The notes beneath the pieces are model-generated. The model worked only from the letters and a program-made list of their open reading frames with translations, searched no databases and was not told the DNA's origin. A stretch of 64,000 nucleotides of DNA, taken from positions 64,108,001 through 64,172,000 of the forward strand of contig NC_043009.1 in the NCBI RefSeq assembly GCF_006345805.1. The letters run 5' to 3'. Source of the stretch: Octopus sinensis. Lineage: Eukaryota. Of this stretch, positions 5,601 to 63,504 are shown one piece after another; position 1 is the stretch's first letter; each line of letters opens with the position of its first letter. A program made the position numbers and the translations under genes.

Positions 5601-8600
5601 TCATTGCGCCCCCCAACGCGTGAACAGCCCACGTACAGCCCAGAAAATGTGTTGCATATAAAAAGCTTAGATTCTCGACCCCATGTCGAATTTATCGATT
5701 TTTTCAGAACCGGGGGAACTTTTCAAACTTTTCGCTGCGTTAGTTTTGAATTATGACATTGGGCTATGTGTGTGTCAAGTTTCATCAGAATCGGTTGAAA
5801 GCCGTGGTCAGGGTGAGGGTACAACCTGACAGACACACAGACACACAGACAGACAAACTGCCGTTTATATATAGAGAGATTTCTTTGGAAGTCGTAGATT
5901 GTACAAGAGAGCTGAGCCAAGTTGTTATTGATGTTAGGTGTATGTCCAGTAAAGGTGGCGAGCTGGCAGAAACGTTAGCACGTCGGGCGTAATGCGTAGC
6001 CATATTTCGTCTGCCGTTACGTTCTGAGTTCAAATATATGCGTGACCGCCGCCTTCAATCGCTGGGTCCCAAGTCGCCGCTTGCTGCTGCTAGTGGTCAA
6101 ACGTTCTACGACCCCCTTGCCTCGCTAACTACCACGATAGGCAAGCGGGTCGTGCTTCCGGTGGTTCGCGCATGCGCGAGAGGGCCCTTCCTTTCTCTGC
6201 CTTGGTAAAGGCACCAACACGCGCGAAATACAAATGGACGGTGCGCGAGCGCGCGCCGTTGTAGGATCACTACAAATGGAATAGTAAATAAAACAGAAAA
6301 AAACAGAGCTTGCTTTGGGGCCAGTCACTGGAATATGTTTGTTAGTAATTTAAGGCCAAAAAATCGAGTAGTCTTTCTCTGGATGTGGTCTAGGATGTCT
6401 GTGAGTGCAGCTACAGCACCGACGCAGATGTTTGAGTAATAAGTCTTTCTGTTGTCTTCACAGCTCTGCAGCGCTCGGAATTTACTTTCTTGTCCGTAAA
6501 ATACCAAACACATTCGACGCTTCCAAATTTTGTTTTTTTGAGAAATACTTTAGATGTGTTAAAATGAAAACGTGTTTGATTCTCGTGTATGTCGTAGATA
6601 TGTAAAGAAGTGTTTCCAAAGGAAATGAGGTCTACTAATTAGTTGTCAAAGAGTTATTGAAAGATTCCTGGATCTGGTAATGAGGGGTTTCTTTAGTTTT
6701 GGTTGGGGAGGGCGCGTGGCTTAGTGGTTAGGGCATTCGGCTCATGATCGTGAGGTTGTGAGTTCGATTCCCGGCGACGCGTTGTGTCCTTGAGCAAGAC
6801 ACTTTATTTCACGTTGCTCCAGTCCACTCAGCTGGCAAAAATGAGTTGTACTTGTATTTCAAAGGGTCAGCCTTGTCACTCTCTGTGTCACGCTGATTAT
6901 CCCCGAGAACTACGTTAAGGGTACACGTGTCTGTGGAATGCTCAGCCATTTGCACGTTAATTTCACGAGCAAGCTGTTCCGTTGATCGTATCAACTGGGA
7001 CCCTCGTCGTCGTAACCGGCGGAGTATTTTAGTTTTGGTTGATAGAAAAAGATAAAAAAGAGATAAAATAATCTGTCGCTTTTGTAAATAAAATGTTATC
7101 TCGTCGTTATCGGAATTTAGTGTGTTTGAAATTCATCATCATCATCATTGTTCGACCGTGGTCGAGACAATGGAATTTACCATGCTACGCCAGACTTCAC
7201 GGTCCATCATAGCATTACGGAGGTCCTGTTGCTGGATGCCTGTATCCCTGGAGATTACATCAGGGTAGGAGAGTGTGCGCCCTCTGGTATCACGAGTAGA
7301 TGGCTTCCAGGGGAGAAGAGTAGAAATTGCCTCGTTTTCAGCTCTACAGCAATGTCCAGCAAACTGGACTCTCTTACCTGAAATTCCTACAGCATATTCC
7401 ATTAAAAAACCCCCAAAGAATGTATAAACAATGGAGTTAGAACTACTTACCTCAGATACAATGGTTGAGAACTCCTTTGTGTTGAACATCCGACCATTAC
7501 TACACGGTTCCTTTGTAGAATTACTGACTGGAAGATTATAAAATCCTTCTTCCATATCAAGGCGATACACAGAGCATTCATCATCTTCAGTAGTTATCTT
7601 ATCCAAGAATTCATTCAAGGTGATATTTGATGGAATCAAGGATTTATTGAAATTTGAAGGATAACAAGCAAAGGGGACCTTCTCCCTTACAAACACCATC
7701 GTTAAAAATTGTAAGGCATCAAAAACTACGTATAATATAACAAAGGCCGTAAGTTTCTTTTGATATGGGCCAAATCCTCCACAGTTTTTCAGTATTTCCT
7801 CGGTAATTTCAGATATTGACAAATCTAAAATTAAAAATTAAGAATTTCACTAATTAAATTTAATGATTTCCACTTGGATTATTTCTGATTTAGAGTTTAA
7901 TTATTTTTGAAGCAGGTAACAAATACAAGCACATCAAATGAAGACATACAAACGATTGGATCAGCACCAATGTACGGTAAACCCTCGACTATCGCGGGTG
8001 TTTCGTCCCCACCGCACGCGACAGGTGAAAATCCACGAAATAGAAATAGTAGTGTACTATATATTTTAAAATTATTTTTATAATTTGTATATACTTGACA
8101 ACCGATGCTGGTGTGTTTTCGTCCCCGTCACTTAGCGGTTCGGCAAAAGAGACCGATAGAATAAGTACTAGGCTTACAAAGAATAAGTCCCGGGGTCGAT
8201 TTGCTCGACTAAAGACGGTGCTCCAGCATGGCCGCAGTCAAATGACTGAAACAAGTAAAAGATAAAAGATAAAGAAGATACTCTTTTACTCTTTTACTTG
8301 TTTCTGTCATTTGACTGCGCCATGCTGGAGCACCGCCTTTAGTTGAGCAAATCGACTCCAGGACTTATTCTTTGTAAGCCTAGTACTTATTCTATCGGTC
8401 TCTTTTGTCGAACCGCTAAGTTACGGAGACGTAAACACACCAGCATCGGTTGTCAAGTAATGTTGGGGGACGAACACAGACACACAAACACACACACACA
8501 TATACACATATAAACGACGGGCTTCTTTCAGTTTCCGTCTACCAAATCCACTCACAAGTCTTTGGTCTGCCCGAGGCTATAATAGAAGACATTTGCCCAA

Positions 8601-12694: not shown

Positions 12695-13078
12695 GTGGAG
12701 GCGCAATGGCCCAGTGGTTAGGGCAGCGGACTCGTGGTCATAGGATTGCGGTTTCGATTCCCAGACCGGGCGTTGTGAGTGTTTATTGAGCGAAAACACC
12801 TAAAGATCCACGAGGCTCCGGCAGGGGATGGTAGTGATCCCTGCTGTACTCTTTTACCACAACTTTCTCTCACTCTTACTTCCTGTTTCTGTTGTACCTG
12901 TATTTCAAAGGGCCGGCCTTGTCATTCTTTGTGTCACGCTGAATATCCCCGAGAACTACGTTAAGGGTACGCGTGTCTGTGGAGTGCTCAGCCACTTACA
13001 CGTTAATTTCACGAGCAGGCTGTTCCGTTGATTCGGATCAACCGGAACCCTCGTCGTCGTAACCGACGGAGTGCTTCC
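12695..13078 (+). mobile_element. SINE family 2 copy
   Basis: Near-identical to 1833-2205. Confidence 0.85.
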
Positions 13079-14410: not shown

Positions 14411-14518
14411 TACATACAGATATATATATATATATATATATATTACATACAGATATATATATATATATTATATATTATATATAGATATATATATTATATA
14501 TATATATATATATATATG

Positions 14519-16805
14519 AAAAAACAAGTCAAAAATAGAAAATGCTAAGATAATTTTATAGTGAATCTTTCAGTACCGGTTTCGGTCATTTTGAGACCTT
14601 TTCAACTGTACGATTAAATAATTAAATTTAGAAAAATTAGAAGAAAAGTTTTTTTAAAAGAATATTTCTATAGTAGTGTTCAGATATAAGTAGCATTCTG
14701 CCTTTCTCTGACTCCCTTGTTTGCACTTGTGTGTTCGAGGTCAGGTCGTTGTGAGTTCTTGGTAGGGTAGGTGAAGAATAAGGAGGCTGATGTGGTGAGG
14801 GGGTGGGGAAATCTGGGAATGCCTTGATGGTCGTATTTTGAATGGTCAGTGGCTGATAGCAGTCGCAGTTCAATTCAGGAATTGTTTATGGAATTTGCGT
14901 AGGCGTTATACTGAAAGACATTAGTGACAAGGTTAAGGGGTGGAAGGTGGAGAAGTAGAAGAAGAAGAAGAAGATGACGATGTTGATGATGATGATGAGA
15001 TGAAGAAGAAGAAGAAGAAGAAGGAGAAGGGAAGATGATGGTGATGATGGATGGTGATGATGATGACGACGACGATGATGATAATGATGATGATGAAGAA
15101 GAGAGGAAGAAGAAGAAGAAAAAAACAGAGAAGGGAGAATATGAATGGGTGAAAGTATAGCTGTGATGGGGCTGATTAGTAATGGATTCTATGGAGTGTA
15201 ATATTTGTGTGTGTATATATTCTTTTATTCTAAAGTGAGGTATATTAATTGTTTGTCGTAGACCCGTTAAGAAGTGGCTTGTATTTTGTAATAAAGAGAT
15301 TTTCTTTACTTATTCGTTGTCTCGAGGTTGTATCGTCCCTAAATTGGTAGAGGGGGAAAATCCTGAAGTTTGGTGTTTTTGTTGGCGCAAGTATCTATGT
15401 GTGGCTAAAAGCTATTTTTCTGTTTTGGGGAATTTTTATCTGGGATCTGTGCAGGGCCATTCGTTTACGCAAACCATTTTTTGTTTGGCCTATGTTCTGC
15501 TCTTGACACCGGAGCAGGTTAGTGAGTATATTAGGTTCTCCGAAGCACATGTGAAGTTGCTTTTCACTGTAAACCGTTGTCCCTGTTTGAAGGAGAACTC
15601 TGATCCCTCAATTAGATAGTCGCATATCCCGCAATTGGGTCTTCCACATTTTTTTACTGTCGGCTTCTGTGTTGAAGAGTGAATTCGGGCTTGTGTTAGG
15701 AGACTTTTCATGGATCTAGGCTGTCTTTTGCTTTTTATGATCGTGTGTGTTGGAGGATTGTGTTCATTCTGTGGTCTTTTTTTAGGAGGGGTATGTTGTG
15801 GAGGATGGTGCTGAAGCTTCGTTATTGAGAGGGTTGTGTGTGGAGATGTATGGTAAGGCTTTTGGTTGTAAGTTTTTCTTTGATTTGGGATGTCTCAGTT
15901 CCTTGATGTTAAGTTGAAGGGCACGTTGAATGCACTGTCAATAAGTGAAGGTGGATAGTTCCTGGTGATAAGGGTATCTTTAGTTCTTGTAGTCGTGTGT
16001 CTCTGGTGTTTGCGTTAGAGACTATAGTGCATATCCTTTTTGCTAGATTGAAGGGGATATTCATCCTGGTGTGTCTGGGGTGGCCTGAATTGAATGGAAG
16101 ATATTGCTTAGAGTCTGTAGGCTTATAGTATATGTCTGTTTCTATTATATTATTAGCTTTCTTAATGAGGATATCGAGGAAGGGGAGTTGTTGTTGGCTG
16201 TATTCCATCGTGAATGGATGTTTACGTCCAGTCCGTTTAAAATTTCCTGGAATTCTATGAGTTTTTCTATATTTTTATGCCAAAGGATGAAACAGTCATC
16301 TAGATATCTCTTCCAGTTGTTTCTATGTAGATGGAGAAAGGGCTGCCATATCTTTCTAGAACCTTACGATACAGACTGATCTCTAGGTATCCTATGACTA
16401 GGTTGGCAAAGGAGGGGGCCATTCGTGTACCCATCGCAGTCCCCGATTTTTGTCGTAGAAGTTGTCATTGAAGGCGAAGAAGTTATTTTCCAGGATGAAT
16501 TTAACCCCTTCTATCACAAATTCTTTTTTGATGCGGTGTGGTAGTTCGTTGGCGTGATTCTCTAGCCAGAATTGGATTGCCTCTAGTCCTAGGTTGTGGG
16601 GGATATTGGAGTAGAGTTGACTACATCGAAGGATACCAGTATGGTGTTTTTGTTTATAGTATTCGGTAGGTGATTGAGCATATCTAAGTCGTCCCTATAT
16701 AGCTTTTGACATGTTTGAGGAGTGGTTTTAACAGGGTGTCTAAAAAGTTACTGAGGCGGTGGGTTTCGCATGCGGGACCTGCTATTATGGGTCTAAATCT
16801 TTAAA
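14519..16805 (-). mobile_element. Penelope-like retroelement, 5'-truncated and decayed (RT + GIY-YIG endonuclease + 3' UTR with HHR), flanked by (TA)n
   Basis: Frameshifted peptides ...GTAMGTRMAP..., RYLDD, LPFLDILI..YYKPTDSKQYL..SGHPRH..IPFNLAKRI, KCGRPNCGICDYL...FTCASENLIYSLTC; (TA)n at ~14330-14518 and ~16810-16834. Confidence 0.9.
14564..14615 (-). ncRNA. Minimal type I hammerhead ribozyme, U3-A8 core variant, at the PLE 3' end
   Basis: minus strand: aatcgtacag-TTGAAAA-ggtc tcaaaat gacc-GAAA-ccgg-TA-ctgaaagatt; the palindromic ccgg in place of stem III is typical of PLE HHRs. Confidence 0.7.
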
Positions 16806-16837
16806 AACTATATATATATATATATATATATATACCA

Positions 16838-17247
16838 ATTAAGGACTGAACACGAAAAGTGGACAGTCAACATGCTAGATATAGACGTCAAATCGCCATT
16901 CTCCACAAAAGATTATGTTCTCAGATCAAACTCAACACAAAACCATAGCAATAAACAAGTGAAAAATATACGAAATAAAATAATTTCGGTATCGTGTTTG
17001 CATCTAGTCCAGCAAATTACATTTATAACGGACCATGCTGATGATGGCTGCAGTTTTCCTTGCGGAAAATAACAGCTGAAACTAATTTAGTACATGGGTA
17101 ATTATTTTATTTCGTATATTTTTCACTTGTTTATTGCTATGGTTTTGTGTTGAGTTTGATCTGAGAACATAATCTTTTGTGGAGAATGGCGATTTGACGT
17201 CTATATCTAGCATGTTGACTGTCCACTTTTCGTGTTCAGTCCTTAAT
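16838..17247 (+). mobile_element. Foldback element: perfect 148-bp inverted arms (16838-16985 / 17100-17247) around an HHR-containing spacer
   Basis: The arms are exact reverse complements read base by base; TA-rich flanks. Confidence 0.85.
17033..17097 (+). ncRNA. Type I hammerhead ribozyme (canonical core)
   Basis: ccatg-CTGATGA-t-ggctg[cag ttttcc ttgc ggaaaa taa]cagct-GAAA-cta att tag-TA-catgg; stems I, II and III all pair; GUA cleavage after 17092. Confidence 0.85.
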
Positions 17248-17350
17248 GGTATATATAAATATTTTAATCTTCGGATTCTTTTTAATATGCTAGACCACTG
17301 GTCTTAATTGATAAATATCAATTCTACCCTTAATTAATTTTATAATATAT

Positions 17351-26044: not shown

Positions 26045-43853
<17,809 letters not shown>

Positions 43854-48199: not shown

Positions 48200-48735
48200 T
48201 TCATTCATTGTTCGACCGTGGTCGAGATAATGGAATTTACTATGTTACGCCAGACTTCACGGTCCATCATGGCATTACGGAGGTCCTGTTGCTGGATGCC
48301 TGTATCCTTGGAGATTACATCAGGGTAGGAGAGTGTGCGCCCTCTGGTATCGCGAGCAGATGGCTTCCAGAAGAGAAGAGTAGAAATTGCCTCGTTTTCA
48401 GCTCTATAACAATGTCCAGCAAACTGGACTCTTCTACCTTTCACAAGAGATGATACAGATGGTAGGTTCCCATATATTTGTACTTTGGTTGGATGACGCT
48501 TCCACGAGAGATTTTGAGCTCTCATAAGGAGGCGAGTGTAAGTTCCATCCAACCGCCTCTCAAGCTTCTTTGATAACGTCCAGGTTTCTGAGCCATATAG
48601 TAGAATTGGTTCGACTGTGGCTTTGAAGATTTTAAGTTTGAAATCTCTACTTAGATTTGATGACCAGATCTTATGCATATCATTACAGGCTATTAATTTT
48701 TCTTTAGTCATATATGGGGCATCATGGCCTACTCT
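48200..48735 (-). mobile_element. RTE-clade LINE 3' fragment
   Basis: KIWSSNLSRDFKLKIFKATVEPILLYGSETWTLSK...LDGTYTRLL; (ATGA)n tail. Confidence 0.88.
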
Positions 48736-55900: not shown

Positions 55901-58900
55901 TTGAGACGGACTGGCTAAACTCAAACTCCAATACATTACAACGAAATAAGAAAGACGATTCACATGTTAGTGCTAGCGTAAACATGACACTAAAGGGGTA
56001 CATATTTAAACGCAATAGTAAAATATGTAATTAAGAGAGGAATGTAATCATTAGTGCTGACATTACTGGAGACGTATCCGATTTATTCATAGTATGGTGA
56101 GATAAGCAACTCAAGCGACAGTTAATAAAGAAACCTATAGTACTAGTAATGTACTCGCAGGATGTCGATGATATAAACACATGATTACAATAATCCTACC
56201 AGATAATACAAAGCAAAAAGAAAAATATACGAAGAAAATATACCAACGAAAAGATTAAGAACATCAGAAACTTTCTCCACCAAAACAATAAGGCTTCTCT
56301 CGATTTCCCATCCAAACGTTCCAATAAAAATCTACCGGTTCTAGATACGGAAATATATGGTAAGAAATTATAAGTGGCATGGAACAACATCATTCACTCA
56401 AATTATAAGAAAATTACGACGACCAAACACCTGATCCTTCAAAGCTCTGCTTTGCTAACATATGAAAAGATAAACAACTTGATAGCAGATCTTGTAAAGA
56501 CCCGTAAGAAGCACAAGAAATGTATCTCTTTAACCTGCATTCTGTGAACCGAGAAAGCACTCCATGATTTCATCCACCTCATAGGTGTCAAATTTTTTAA
56601 TCAACACAAATAACATACAAGTATAAACAATGTATTTGGATCATTATTTACGTTCTGAGTTCAAATTCCGCCGAGATCGACTTCGCCCTTCATCCTTTCG
56701 GGATTGATGAATTAAGTACCAGTTGCGTACTGGGGTCGATCTAATCGACTGGCCCCCTTCCCAAAAACTTTCGGGCCTTGTGCCTAGAGTAGAAAGAAAT
56801 ATATTTGGATCGTTTTGAATTTCGTCAATCTTCAGACCAAGTTACCTGACGAAGAGCAGCAGCATACATTGCGCCATTCCTCTAAAACATTAGGCTAGAG
56901 TGCTTAGTACTAATAATTCTTTTTACTAAAGGCACAAAGCTTGAAGTTTGGAAGGAGAAACCTTGACGGGTCCATTAAACGCAGTACTCCACTGGCACTT
57001 ATTTTATCGACCCCGAAAGGACGAAAGGCAAAATCGATCTCGGTGCCATTTGAACTTAACACATAAAGACGGGCGAAATACCGCTAACCATTTTGTCCGG
57101 CATGCTAACGATTCTTTTCTACTCTAGGCACAAGGCCCGAAATTTTTGGGGAGGGGGCCAGTCGATTGGATCGATCCCAGTGCGCAACTGGTACTTAATT
57201 CATCGACCCTGAAAAGATGAAAGGCAAAGTCGACCTCGGCGGAATTTGAACTCAGGACGTAAAGACAGACGAAATACCTATTTCTTTACTGCCCACAACG
57301 GGCTAAACACAGAGGGGACGAACAAGGACAGACAAACGGATTAAGTCGATTATATCGACCCCAGTGTGCAACTGGTACTTATTTAATCGAACCCGAAAGG
57401 ACGAAAGGCAAAGTCGACCTCGGCGGAATTTGAACTCAGAACGTAGCGGCAGACGAAATACCGCTAAGCATTTCGCCCGGCGTGCTAACGTTTCTGCCAG
57501 CTCGCCGCCTTATCCTAACACTGTGAAGCAAAATTCAATTTTTTTTCTTTGGTTATTTCCTGTTTGCTTCTTTGGTTATTTCCTGTTTGCTTCTATCTAG
57601 AATTCAAAAGAAACGACCACTATTCCCTTCAAACTATGCTTTTGTGACCTGGATATCATGCGTAACCCTTGACGTGTAGTTCTCAGAGAGATTCAGCGTG
57701 ACACAGAATGTGACAAGGCTAACCCCTTTGAAATACAGTGACTAGAGCAACGGCGAGTATCGAACTCACGACCCTACGATCGTGGGCCGAATTCATACAC
57801 GCACACACACACAAATTCACATACCTCCTTTTTACATACCCACACTTATACTCACACAGAGTTGAAACGCTGATTTTTTTTCACCCCTTCCTTTTATATT
57901 CATCTATCACTCCCTTCCTTTCTCATTCATATGTTGTGACGAGAAGATAGAAGATACACGACGCGCTCTTTGCCACTTCCTTTCTCTCATTGCTGTTACT
58001 TTCTTGCACTCTCTCTCAGTCAGGGCTATTACTCTCACTACTTCTCCTTCACTGAATTACTATTTTCTCTCCTCTCCCTTCACTTATACCACTCTTTCTC
58101 CAAAAACCATCCTACTCCTACTCTGTCATTTTGGACGCTCATTACTATATCAGGAGATTATCTATATTTATATGCTTTCTTTCAGTTTGACTTAGTGTGC
58201 GAGAAGAAATGGCTGAGGTCCACTTTACAGTCAGTTTATTTTGTCGGTTATCTATTTGGATCAATTGTATTTGGAGTTATATCTGATAGGTACAGTATCA
58301 TTAAATCATTAATTTCCATATATTTAATATGATATTTATATAATCTACACGCTTTTAAAGTTTATAATCGTTGCCATTTCTAGCAAAATTCTTTCCGTTT
58401 GAAATTTTGAATAATTTCCACATGAAACTGAAATCGACCATTAGAGAAAGAAATAATTTTCCTTTATACCTAAAATATGTCGTCAAAACACGTCCTACAT
58501 TCAAATGTGTGTGAAGGCGCATGGCTTAGTGGTAAGGGATATTCGGCTCACGATTGTAGGGTCGTGAGTTCGATACTCGGCGTTGCTCTAGTCACTGTAT
58601 CTCAAAGGGGTCAGCCTTGTCACATTCTGTGTCACACTGAATCTCTCTGAGAACTACACGTTAAGGGTAAGGGATGTATGTGAAGTGCTCAACGACTTGC
58701 ACATGAATTTCACGAGATGGCTGTTCCGTTGACGGGGTCAAGTAGGACGCTCATCGTCATAAACAACGGAATGGCATTTTTTTTTTTACTTGCAAGTTTA
58801 AAGTTAGAATTGATACAGTGCTTGTCTGTTCATCTCCAGTATGTTAGCATTGCTTTCTAGTGTAGAGGACATAACAAATACGTGATGAGGTTTCCATCTG

Positions 58901-59217: not shown

Positions 59218-62038
59218 CGTGTCTGTGTGTATATGTGTATGATGGACTTCTTTCATTTTCCATCTACTAAATCCACTCACAAGGCTTTGGTCGGCCCGAA
59301 ACTTTAGTAAAAGACACTTGCTCAAGGTGCCAAGCAGTAGGACTGAACCCGGAGCCATGCGGTAGGGAAGCAAGCTTCTTACCACACAGCCACTCCTGTT
59401 GAAATACTCTTTACCTTTTGGATACGGTTTGGCGCAGTGGAAAACAAATAAGCTTCGAGAAACACACATTTGTTTATAAATTGAAACTAGATGATAACAT
59501 TGAAATATCACAACCTGCCCATTCACTCTCCTCTGAAAATTCTTTTCTCTACAATTAGAGACATTTTATCAGTGAAAGTCTAAGTATTATCGTGAACTAC
59601 GAAATCGAACTTCGCAGCCAGATGATATTGGGACATGATTTCGATTCTTGAATGGCTTTATATAATTCCATTTTACACTTCATCACGAACGAATAAATAA
59701 ACAAACGCCATCTATCTACTCTTTGATGTCACGAACTTCATGCCCGTGTCAGAAATTATTGTGAAAGCTTGAAGGCTCTCGAATTAGCTTCAAATTCTTG
59801 CACAAGCCCAGCAATTTCAAGAAGGGAGTGAGTCGATTACACCGACCACAATGCTCAACTGAAACTTATTTTTTGAACCTCGAATGGACGGCAGTTAAAG
59901 TCGACCTCAGTAGTATTTGAACTCAGAACGTAAAGACGTATGAAATACCTATTTCTTTATTACCCACAAGGGGCTAAACACACAGAGGACAAACAAGGAC
60001 ATTCAAACGGATTAAGTCGATTATATCGACCCCAGTGCGTAACTCTTCCTTATTTAATTGACTCCCGGAAGAATGAAAGGCAAAGTCGACCTCGGCGGAA
60101 TTTGAACTCAGAACGTAACGGTAGGCGAAATACCGATATGCATTTCGCCCGGCGTGCTAACGTTTCTGCCAGCTCGCCGCCTTTGACGTGTGAAATACCT
60201 ATTTCTTTACTACCCACAAGGGGCTAAACATAGAGGGGACAAACAAGGACAAACGGATTAAGTCGATTATATCGACTCCAGTGCGTAACTGGTACTTATT
60301 TAATCGAACCCGAAAGGATGAAAGGCAAAGTCGACCTCGGCGGAATTTGAACTCAAAACGTGGCGGCAGACGAAATACCGATAAGCATTTTTCTAGGTGC
60401 AGTAACGGTTCTGCCAGCTTCACGCCTTTATAAGCTTAACTTTATTGACCTATTATGTATATATATATTATGTATTGACCTATTATGTATATATATATTA
60501 TGTATTGACCTATTATGTACATAGGCCGTTAAGTTGAAGTCAGATCATTGTCAAGAATGAGAATGTTTTAACTCCAGCGATGACACACTTTATTCATTTA
60601 TACAATGAAATGCCGGACGAAATGCTGCTAAGCATTTTCCTCGCCGTACTAGCCATTCTACCAGCTTGTCGCCTTGAAAGATTTCATAGTTTCAGTTGAA
60701 TTATGCAGTGTGGTAAGTAGCTTGCTTAACAACCACATGGTTCCGGGTTCAGTCTCACTGCGTGACATCTTGGGCTAGTGTCTTCCACTATAGCCTCGGG
60801 CCTTGTGAGTAGATTTGGTAGACGGAAACTGAAAGAAGCCCGTTGTATATATGTATATATGTGTGTTTGTTTGTGTGTCTGTGTTTGTCCCCCTAGCATT
60901 GCTTGACAACCAATGCTGGTGTGTTTATGTCCCCGTCACTTAGCGGTTCGGCATAAGCGACCGATAGAATAAGTACCAGGCTTACAAAGAATTAATCCTG
61001 GGGTCGATTTGCTCGACTAAAGGCGGTGCTCCAGCATGGCCGCAGTCAAATGACTGAAAGAAGTAAAAGAGTAAAAAGGGAGTAAAGAGAGTTAAATTTC
61101 ACGATAACATCGTATTAAAACGATGAGACAAGATAAAGCCTAAAAAATATGATTATATTCTGGATTTCTGCTTGGGGTTCACGCTTAATCGCCTGATTTC
61201 AGATTTAATAAGCAAAACGCATCCTTCAATGATTGTCTTTATAAGCTCAAATGACCGGGCGTTGTGAGTGTTTATTGAGCGAAAACACCTAAAAGCTCCA
61301 CGAACCTCCGGCAGGGGATGGTGGTGATCCCTACTGTACTCTTTCACCACAACTTTCTCTCACTCTTACTTCCTGTTTCTGTTGTACCTGTATTTCAAAG
61401 GGCCGGCCTTGCCACTCTCTGTGTCACGCTGAATATCCCCGAGAATTACGTTAAGGGTACACGTGTCTGTGGAGTGCTCAGCCACTTACACATTAATTTC
61501 ACGAGCAGGCTGTTCCGTTGATTCGGATCAACCGGAACCCTCGTCGTCGTAACCGACGGAGTGCTTCCAAAAAAAAAAAAAAAGCTCAAATTCCAGTTAA
61601 ATAGAAGATGCAGGCATGAACATAAACAATTGTAATTAATGGAATAACTTAATTTTGTATTCGTATGTAATTTTTAATTTACCATTAATTATTTTCGAAT
61701 AAGGCTTTTATTCTGATTCACATAAATAATTAGGTTTACATTTTTCTTTTTCGTACAGATTTGGTCGGAAGCGGAGTTTTTTCTTGGCAAACCTATTCTT
61801 AGTTGTATGTGGACTCGGGAAAATCTTCGTGCCATCATTGACCATACTTATGATTCTCCTTTGCTTTCAAGGTTATGGTTATATTGGCCAATTAATTAGC
61901 ATTTATACATTGTGTAAGTTATTGCCATAGTTATCGATTTATATTTTTTCGTAAGGTATATCGTGAAACTACGTGTTTTTGCATAATTTTTTTCTGCTTG
62001 TACAACCAAACGTGCGCAGGTGTGTGTGTGCGCGCGTG

Positions 62039-62667: not shown

Positions 62668-62739
<72 letters not shown>

Positions 62740-63504
62740 CAGTGTGCAATGTTTTACCAAAAGGGAAAACTATAAATGTCACTAAATACGAGTAGGGCGT
62801 TAGAAACACCTAGATTGCTAGGAATAAGAGCTAAAGTCCTCTAATGCTGTAGTCAAAACACATAATTGTATACATGTTTAATGACAGGACCTAGAGTCGC
62901 CCGAAAGCACCAATCGAGAATTGCCCATACTGATCGGTCAGTTTCGGCAATTTCCGTTGCCTCATCAGTAAGGACTGGCTCAACTTGGACAGATTCCGAG
63001 CTTAATACTCCGTCAGTATATATGTTTCCACAATAAAAATCTATGGATGATTTTGCGAATCGCTAATACGCATACAGAAAATTAAAATACTCAGCAGTTT
63101 GCAATGTTTTACCTAAAAGGAAAACTATAAATGTCAGTAAATATGACTAAGTTGTTAGAAACACCTACATTGCTAGAAATAATTATTTAATCGACCCTGA
63201 AAGGAATAAAAGGCACAGTCAACCTCGGCGGAATTTGAACTCAAAATGTAAAGACGGACGAAATGTTGCTACTCTTACTCTTTTACTCTTTTACTTGTTT
63301 CAGTCATTTGACTGCGGCCATGTTGGAGCACCACCTTTAGTCAAGCAAATCGACTCCAGGACTTATTCTTTGTAAGCCTAGTACATATTCTATCGGTTCT
63401 TTTGCCGGACCGCCTAGTTACGAGGACGAAAACACACCAGCGTCGGTTGTCAAGCGATGCTAGGGGGACAAACACAGACACACAAACATACACACAAACA
63501 CATA

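Follow-up and report, generated by a model that had tools for sequence, protein, structure and literature searches.

A 412-bp hammerhead-bearing foldback in octopus DNA, probably the footprint of a single PLE-type retrotransposition into a (TA)n microsatellite

A 412-bp foldback in the 64-kb stretch of octopus DNA analyzed here (the window) is probably the footprint of a single Penelope-like element (PLE)-type retrotransposition into a (TA)n microsatellite. It is built from a 264-bp copy of a unit carrying a hammerhead motif and a 148-bp inverted copy of the same unit's 3' end. The insertion pattern described for PLEs (PMC8557442, PMC11167929) was found, namely, an AT-rich, (TA)n target, 5' truncation, and inverted partial copies whose 3' termini are outermost.

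Results

Anatomy of the foldback and its flanks

The features of the foldback and of the elements around it are listed in Table 1. The original prediction had described exact 148-bp arms around a 114-nt spacer, and this description was confirmed: the arms are 100% complementary over their whole length, with 114 nt between them. When one 1-nt indel was allowed (an extra A at 16837), the symmetry reached outward via CC/GG (16835-16836 and 17248-17249) to the TA tracts, and in the unique DNA beyond these tracts there was neither mirroring nor duplication of either flank. Read from arm to flank, both outer ends have the form ...TTCAGTCCTTAAT(T)GG followed by (TA)n and differ from each other by 1 nt (AAT versus AATT), and the last template nucleotide shared by both arms lies, to within 1 nt, at ...CCTTAAT(T)GG against (TA)n. 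The (TA)n setting abutting a Penelope copy, which had also been pointed out, was found as described, with (TA)13 and (TA)4 tracts as flanks and a minus-strand PLE adjoining. Near the 3' end of the tail, the right arm contains a predicted hairpin (GACTG...CAGTC, approximately 17217-17241).

Table 1. Coordinates of the foldback, its flanks, and the other hammerhead-bearing units of the window
Feature	Position	Strand	Basis or remark
Older PLE, 5'-truncated and frameshifted, with RT, CX4CxxC linker, and GIY-YIG remnants	14517-16808	-	Three-frame translation
Left remnant of target microsatellite, (TA)13	16809-16834	.	Sequence reading; adjoins the older minus-strand PLE at its 5' end as well
CCA, complement of (T)GG; final 3'-terminal nucleotides of the inverted copy, one base extra versus the right end	16835-16837	-	
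Left arm; inverted copy, truncated further, of the unit's 3'-terminal 148 nt	16838-16985	- (sense on minus)	100% reverse complement of 17100-17247
47 nt 5' of the ribozyme, with the 5'-truncation point of the longer copy	16986-17032	+	Head-to-head junction at 16985/16986
Type I hammerhead motif of PLE-class form	17033-17097	+	Descriptor scan; predicted cut after A17092
Right arm; the unit's tail on the 3' side of the ribozyme, including a predicted terminal hairpin	17100-17247	+	
GG, final nucleotides of the unit's 3' terminus	17248-17249	+	Found at both outer ends
Right remnant of target microsatellite, (TA)4	17250-17257	.	Sequence; unique flank beyond is neither mirrored nor duplicated
Third hammerhead unit	62972-62739	-	Hit to Rfam Hammerhead_3 (E = 8.7e-4) with 28.1 bits, short of the gathering score (48.5)

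The total structure (16835-17249; 412 bp) comprises the 264-bp longer copy and the 148-bp inverted copy. Its coding content is limited to chance ORFs of at most 66 aa without homologues, and an ORF for RT and GIY-YIG is absent, which is consistent with either extreme 5' truncation or a non-autonomous template. A single hammerhead is present and the unit is not directly repeated, so the structure does not have the head-to-tail organization of a retrozyme. The 47 nt immediately upstream of the ribozyme have no similarity elsewhere in the 64-kb window or in the fetched loci.

There are no differences between the arms over 148 bp (95% upper bound, approximately 2% divergence), which makes the insertion event a recent one. 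Among the close inverted repeats of the window and of three of the fetched loci (L001 to L003), the foldback arms are the only perfectly identical pair, as would be expected of one recent event; the remaining close inverted pairs are 75 to 94% identical. The interspersed repeats common to the window and the Octopus bimaculoides loci are 87 to 92% identical, which identifies the host as an octopus or a close relative.

The hammerhead motif

Helix I of the motif pairs CCATG (17033-17037) with CATGG (17093-17097), and the conserved core is present as CTGATGA (17038-17044; C3-U4-G5-A6-N7-G8-A9) and GAA (17078-17080; G12-A13-A14). An extra, bulged T at 17045 directly follows A9. Helix II (17046-17077) consists of GGCTG/CAGCT, a 2x2 internal loop, and a 7-bp distal hairpin, and helix III (17081-17091; ACTA-ATT-TAGT) has 4 bp and a 3-nt loop. 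The A15.1-U16.1 pair is A17081-T17091, and H17 is A17092, a non-G, giving a predicted GUA cleavage triplet. Three helices of 5 bp, 5+7 bp, and 4 bp thus surround the core, with helix I open. At the position of the G10.1-C11.1 closing pair, U17045 is inserted and a G17046-U17077 wobble is found instead. The complete type I hammerhead of the original prediction, with its parts placed as here and its cut after 17092, was therefore recovered.

The frequency with which such a motif arises by chance was estimated from Markov-1 simulations (n = 500 windows of 64 kb). A looser descriptor, with helices of at least 4, 4, and 3 bp, 0 to 1 extra nucleotide, and G-U pairs allowed, is expected to match 0.008 times per 64 kb on both strands together, and a hammerhead with the observed 5/5/4-bp helices occurred in none of the 500 simulations. 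The motif is not a product of chance. Its secondary structure is iso-energetic with the minimum free energy (MFE) structure of the isolated 75-nt segment (-19.0 kcal/mol), and the pair probabilities are 0.60 to 0.87 for helix I, 0.92 to 1.0 for helix II, and 0.19 to 0.25 for helix III.

None of the Rfam hammerhead models (RF00163, RF00008, and RF02275-7) matched the site at the gathering score when the whole window was searched, and no hammerhead was reported there at E ≤ 10 when either 701 nt or 87 nt alone was searched. The sensitive Rfam scan of the whole window gave only miRNA noise driven by microsatellites; the window is very rich in (TA)n, (CA)n, and (TATG/CATA)n, and many spurious miRNA-family matches are obtained with Rfam at relaxed thresholds. 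Because the site is not matched by any Rfam hammerhead model, the term "canonical" that had been applied to it is unjustified. The segment is a real hammerhead-class motif of non-canonical form, and self-cleavage is predicted for it. It lies 157 nt from the 3' terminus at (TA)n, and no RT-encoding parent of the same sequence was found in the window or the fetched loci.

The deviations of the motif are those of a published class. The hammerheads of PLEs have a bulged nucleotide after A9, a long helix II, and a short 5-bp helix I (PMC4209133), and all three traits are present in the foldback motif. Some PLE hammerheads are also bulged within helix II; as a class they have low activity in vitro, and some were missed by Cervera and de la Pena's own descriptors (PMC4209133). 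The original prediction had treated the extra nucleotide after A9 as a tolerated deviation. The nucleotide is indeed there (U17045), and such oddities are better described as the published signature of PLE hammerheads. With the minimal hammerheads (min-HHRs) of PLEs (Cervera and de la Pena 2014, PMC4209133), the foldback motif shares the type I topology, an unpaired nucleotide between A9 and helix II, an enlarged and interrupted helix II, a 5-bp helix I without a defined loop 1, and a tendency to be missed by standard models. It differs from them in that a G10.1-U11.1 wobble replaces G-C and in that helix III is a proper 4-bp hairpin with a 3-nt loop, whereas the min-HHRs have a 1- to 2-bp palindromic helix III; with such a hairpin, the foldback motif could fold as a monomer. 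Taken together, these comparisons support placing the foldback hammerhead in the PLE class.

In the predicted fold of the plus-strand RNA of the whole structure (-279.6 kcal/mol), the arms form a 148-bp perfect duplex, helices II and III persist at its tip, and helix I is absent from the MFE structure. A transcript through 16838-17247 of either strand would contain this perfect RNA duplex and would be a potential ADAR or small-RNA substrate; coleoid cephalopods edit RNA heavily.

The neighboring PLE and other hammerhead units in the window

The older PLE to the left of the foldback is bounded by (TA)n at both sides. Its RT matches Pfam RVT_1 (E = 5e-8), and its linker, CGRPNCGIC, is of the CX4CxxC type and Neptune-like. 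It has 732 homologues, many with RVT_1 and GIY-YIG, the best being O. bimaculoides proteins with at most 81% identity. At its 3' end is a decayed hammerhead (14608-14571, minus strand; CAG TTGAAAA GGTC..GACC GAAA CCGG TA/CTG) in which C3 is replaced by T and G8 by A and in which helix III is a palindromic ACCGGT; this is followed by a tail of approximately 57 nt and then (TA)n. We considered the foldback as the inverted copy belonging to this PLE and dropped the idea, since there is no significant similarity between the two and the foldback is therefore not its inverted partner. Judged from this comparison, the neighboring PLE is an independent insertion and not the parent of the foldback unit.

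The third hammerhead (62972-62924, minus strand) has a more standard form, with CTGATGA, helix II GGCAA/TTGCC, helix III ACTGA-CCGA-TCAGT, and a GUA cut. It belongs to a 1.25-copy tandem (62739-63182, minus strand) with a period of 355 nt and a 189-nt tail ending in (TA)n, within which an 89-nt direct repeat (63182-63094 and 62827-62739) is 85% identical. This unit is a candidate non-LTR retrozyme or pseudo-LTR remnant. The order hammerhead, tail, (TA)n thus occurs in three units of the 64-kb window, with tails of 157, 189, and approximately 57 nt. No significant sequence similarity was found among the three outside the motif, which indicates that they belong to different families.

Other features of the window were also recorded. 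An SLC22-like (organic ion transporter) cluster is represented by paralogous first exons at 7145-7822 and 40871-41428 (both minus strand) and by an exon at approximately 58190-58300 (plus strand). Relative to the gene with its start at 41.4 kb, the foldback is probably intronic or downstream, and the hammerhead is on the other strand. The ORF at 7145-7822 (minus strand) extends from exon 1 to a LINE-like tail, which recurs at 48205-48711. A SINE-like repeat of approximately 300 to 380 bp has multiple copies (1835-2201, 12696-13074, 41821-42116, 61253-61564, and others), which are 88 to 91% identical to one site in the O. bimaculoides locus L003 (19403-19772). The segment 29488-30661 is occupied by two minisatellite arrays, whose repeat period is approximately 24 to 27 nt and which contain long repetitive ORFs on both strands (e.g., GPRSQESY and THPQLQG repeats).

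Relatives with the same topology

Two relatives of the neighboring PLE, L006 and L007, were obtained from ENA assemblies, and in both the 3' ends are arranged head-to-head on a kilobase scale. In L007 (5163-7754), the 3'-terminal 610 bp are repeated in inverted orientation just upstream; the two copies are 99.2% identical and stop at one and the same template base, at a site where there is no TA tract. L006 (843-7872) is a composite with (TA)n on both sides, and its outer ends are inverted 3' termini, one of which carries an extra 41-nt "tail" of a known kind. Compared at the sequence level, the foldback is a miniature (264 bp plus 148 bp) of this head-to-head arrangement. No hammerhead was detected in L001 to L007 with the full descriptor, the core-only descriptor, or Rfam, so these loci support the topology of the insertion and not the form of the ribozyme.

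Discussion

Proposed origin of the foldback

The single insertion that we favor would have proceeded as follows. The template would have been a hammerhead-bearing RNA, either the 3' region of an autonomous PLE or a non-autonomous retrozyme-like derivative. A PLE protein would have introduced a nick into each strand of the AT-rich target, and from the resulting 3'-OH ends, reverse transcription would have begun at one common template start site, ...CCTTAAT(T)GG. The longer cDNA, of 264 nt, would have passed through the tail and the hammerhead and continued for another 47 nt, the second would have extended for 148 nt, and the two would then have been joined head-to-head at 16985/16986. The outcome would be identical inverted arms with their outer ends on (TA)n, in which the 114-nt "spacer" would be the extra length of the longer copy and the hammerhead a passenger from the template, kept only in that copy. 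Since one event on one template is sufficient for perfect identity, the homogenization of the arms that had been put forward as an alternative is unnecessary.

According to Craig et al. (PMC8557442), PLE hammerheads lie near the 3' ends of the elements, 5' truncation is strong, partial tandems are common, and an inverted 5'-truncated copy often directly adjoins PLE insertions; (TA)n is a preferred target of the clades Neptune, Hydra, and Naiad. Frangieh et al. (PMC11167929) showed in vitro that a purified PLE protein, that of the lizard Poseidon element, nicks and extends both strands at AT-rich targets and that the RT start site is identical for both strands. Two-strand extension from one RT start predicts opposite-facing copies that end at the same nucleotide and are joined head-to-head. 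We infer from this correspondence that two-strand priming, which is known in vitro from the lizard element and not from a cephalopod element, also took place in the formation of the foldback, and the identity of the template is likewise proposed. The lizard element has a hairpin at its RT start, at a place that matches the predicted 3' hairpin of the foldback tail; this is a resemblance only. Since no parent with the tail of the foldback was found, we infer descent from a PLE or a retrozyme from architecture and not from homology. Snap-back priming of one cDNA on itself was also considered and is disfavored, as no complementarity was seen between the would-be 3' end (the complement of 16986 onward) and the 17099/17100 side.

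Comparison with known systems

The closest known structures are composite PLE insertions (Evgen'ev and Arkhipova 2005; Craig et al. 2021, PMC8557442), which consist of pseudo-LTR partial tandems with an adjoining inverted 5'-truncated copy. The foldback shares with them the head-to-head copies with 3' termini outermost, the (TA)n target, the extreme 5' truncation, and the hammerhead near the 3' end. It differs in its miniature size (264 plus 148 bp), in its lack of coding sequence and of an identified parent element, and in that neither of its ends has the 30- to 40-nt "tail" extension.

Metazoan non-LTR retrozymes, in which units of 150 to 450 bp, each with a type I hammerhead, are repeated in tandem (Cervera and de la Pena 2020, PMC7229834; Li et al. 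2026 preprint), resemble the foldback in that the unit is short, AT-rich, and non-coding and has one type I hammerhead, and in that they probably depend on the PLE machinery. The length of the foldback unit, 264 bp or more, falls within the retrozyme range, and a tandem example is present in the same window (62739-63182, minus strand). Unlike that of retrozymes, the repeat of the foldback is inverted and not head-to-tail, and because only one ribozyme is present, neither a unit-length RNA nor a circle could be excised from it.

The proposed event is also reminiscent of twin priming in LINE-1 elements. There, both target strands prime on the element RNA and the two cDNAs are joined internally, as proposed here, and an upstream segment is inverted without duplication of the 3' end. 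Because both foldback cDNAs would begin at the same template site, a true inverted duplication would result, unlike in L1 twin priming.

Alternative origins and the search for further copies

The event could have been divided into two, with a 264-bp 5'-truncated insertion first and the left arm added later at the DNA level, by fold-back break repair or template switching at (TA)n. Both (TA)n tracts and palindromes break easily and favor template switching, the symmetry of the foldback takes in CC/GG and runs into the TA tract, and the arms are identical, all of which a later duplication would accommodate. We nevertheless consider it unlikely, since the duplication takes in none of the unique flank beyond the TA tract, since the arm stops exactly at the 3' terminus of the element, as it does in L007 without a TA tract, and since a further, separate event would have to be assumed, which is less parsimonious than two-strand priming, a documented process (PMC11167929).

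A different possibility concerns what the arm-ribozyme-arm unit is. It could represent a young non-autonomous family of foldback retroelements, each a 148-bp rod with a self-cleaving hammerhead cap, copied by the PLE machinery. In keeping with this, the 3' end of the unit carries the same terminus that is used as the RT start site, the predicted RNA rod is very stable, and PLE-dependent non-autonomous hammerhead elements are known (PMC7229834; bioRxiv 10.64898/2026.07.22.740005). As a PLE template, a short RNA that begins close to the hammerhead cut is sufficient (PMC11167929), and a read-through transcript could in principle be remobilized. A BLAST search with the foldback returned only itself from the 64-kb window and nothing from 117 kb of fetched related loci, although a sample of this size excludes a very abundant family only and up to tens of thousands of copies could be missed. 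The chance ORFs of 66 aa and 43 aa, which span the arm/spacer and arm/ribozyme junctions, retrieved no record in exact look-ups, a homology search with the 66-aa ORF gave no candidate, and exact-pattern scans of metagenome contigs produced 0 matches. A search for the orthologous locus, made with the first exon of SLC22-like type at 41 kb, yielded just two 1.8-kb Logan contigs with 64 to 69% identity, which were uninformative. In addition to the lack of a second copy in any of these collections, the perfect 148-bp duplex would hinder reverse transcription of the foldback RNA, helix I is unformed in the fold of the full-length RNA, and the layout is fully accounted for as a by-product of insertion, as in L006 and L007, which makes a dedicated family the less economical reading. 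We therefore regard such a family as doubtful and distinctly improbable. The original prediction of a young, self-cleaving, PLE-mobilized foldback retroelement thus holds with respect to its youth and to PLE-type insertion and is not supported with respect to its being a mobile element in its own right.

It is very unlikely that the left arm is an assembly artifact derived from a chimeric or fold-back read. The arms are perfectly identical and PLE inverted structures have been reported to trouble assemblies (PMC8557442), but fold-back read artifacts are normally of read length (kilobases) and not 148 bp with clean junctions, those junctions meet the (TA)13 tract and a different neighboring element, and the 1-nt difference between the ends (AAT versus AATT) is not expected of a mirrored read.

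Least credible of all is a MITE or foldback DNA transposon with a TA or TTAA duplication and a coincidental hammerhead-like motif in its loop, for although long terminal inverted repeats are present and the termini can be read as TA/CC...GG/TA or TTAA/GGACTG...CAGTCC/TTAA, the motif at its observed helix lengths was absent from all 500 simulated windows, it shows the specific traits of PLE hammerheads, its orientation and distance to (TA)n match those of the two other hammerhead units in the window, and there are no other copies in 64 plus 117 kb. PiggyBac-like or Tc1-like readings of the termini (TTAA or TA) were set aside as uninformative, because the flanks lie within a TA-rich tract.

The break point beside the ribozyme

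The right arm begins 7 nt past the predicted cut site, and the left arm accordingly corresponds almost exactly to an inverted 3' cleavage product, a point of the original prediction that is correct as an observation. An arbitrary truncation would stop this close on the 3' side of the cut approximately 3% of the time, by a post hoc estimate. In the lizard element, the hammerhead cuts at +26 and RT starts at +111 to +118, approximately 90 nt farther 3', and an RNA beginning at +20 is still an active template (PMC11167929). As the minimal PLE template starts just 5' of the cut, the 3' cleavage product of the ribozyme should be a competent template, and the short arm could be a near run-off copy of it. 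Ribozyme cleavage is dispensable for PLE insertion in vitro (PMC11167929), and RNA ends at the hammerhead cut site were not found in published PLE work. It is conceivable, though rather unlikely in our estimation, that the foldback records ribozyme action in vivo, with the arm a near run-off cDNA of the 3' cleavage product and a self-cleaved RNA as the PLE template; in a stronger version, the rod-plus-ribozyme unit would itself be propagating as a non-autonomous family.

Significance

The foldback would be a clean, very small, and very young specimen of a known by-product of PLE retrotransposition, in a cephalopod genome, a setting in which hammerhead-bearing elements have hardly been described. 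Two arms that end on one template nucleotide against (TA)n are the genomic counterpart predicted by two-strand nicking and extension from a single RT start in vitro. If the break points of inverted or truncated copies were found to cluster just 3' of the cut genome-wide, this would provide the first trace in a genome of the ribozyme cutting its RNA during the PLE life cycle.
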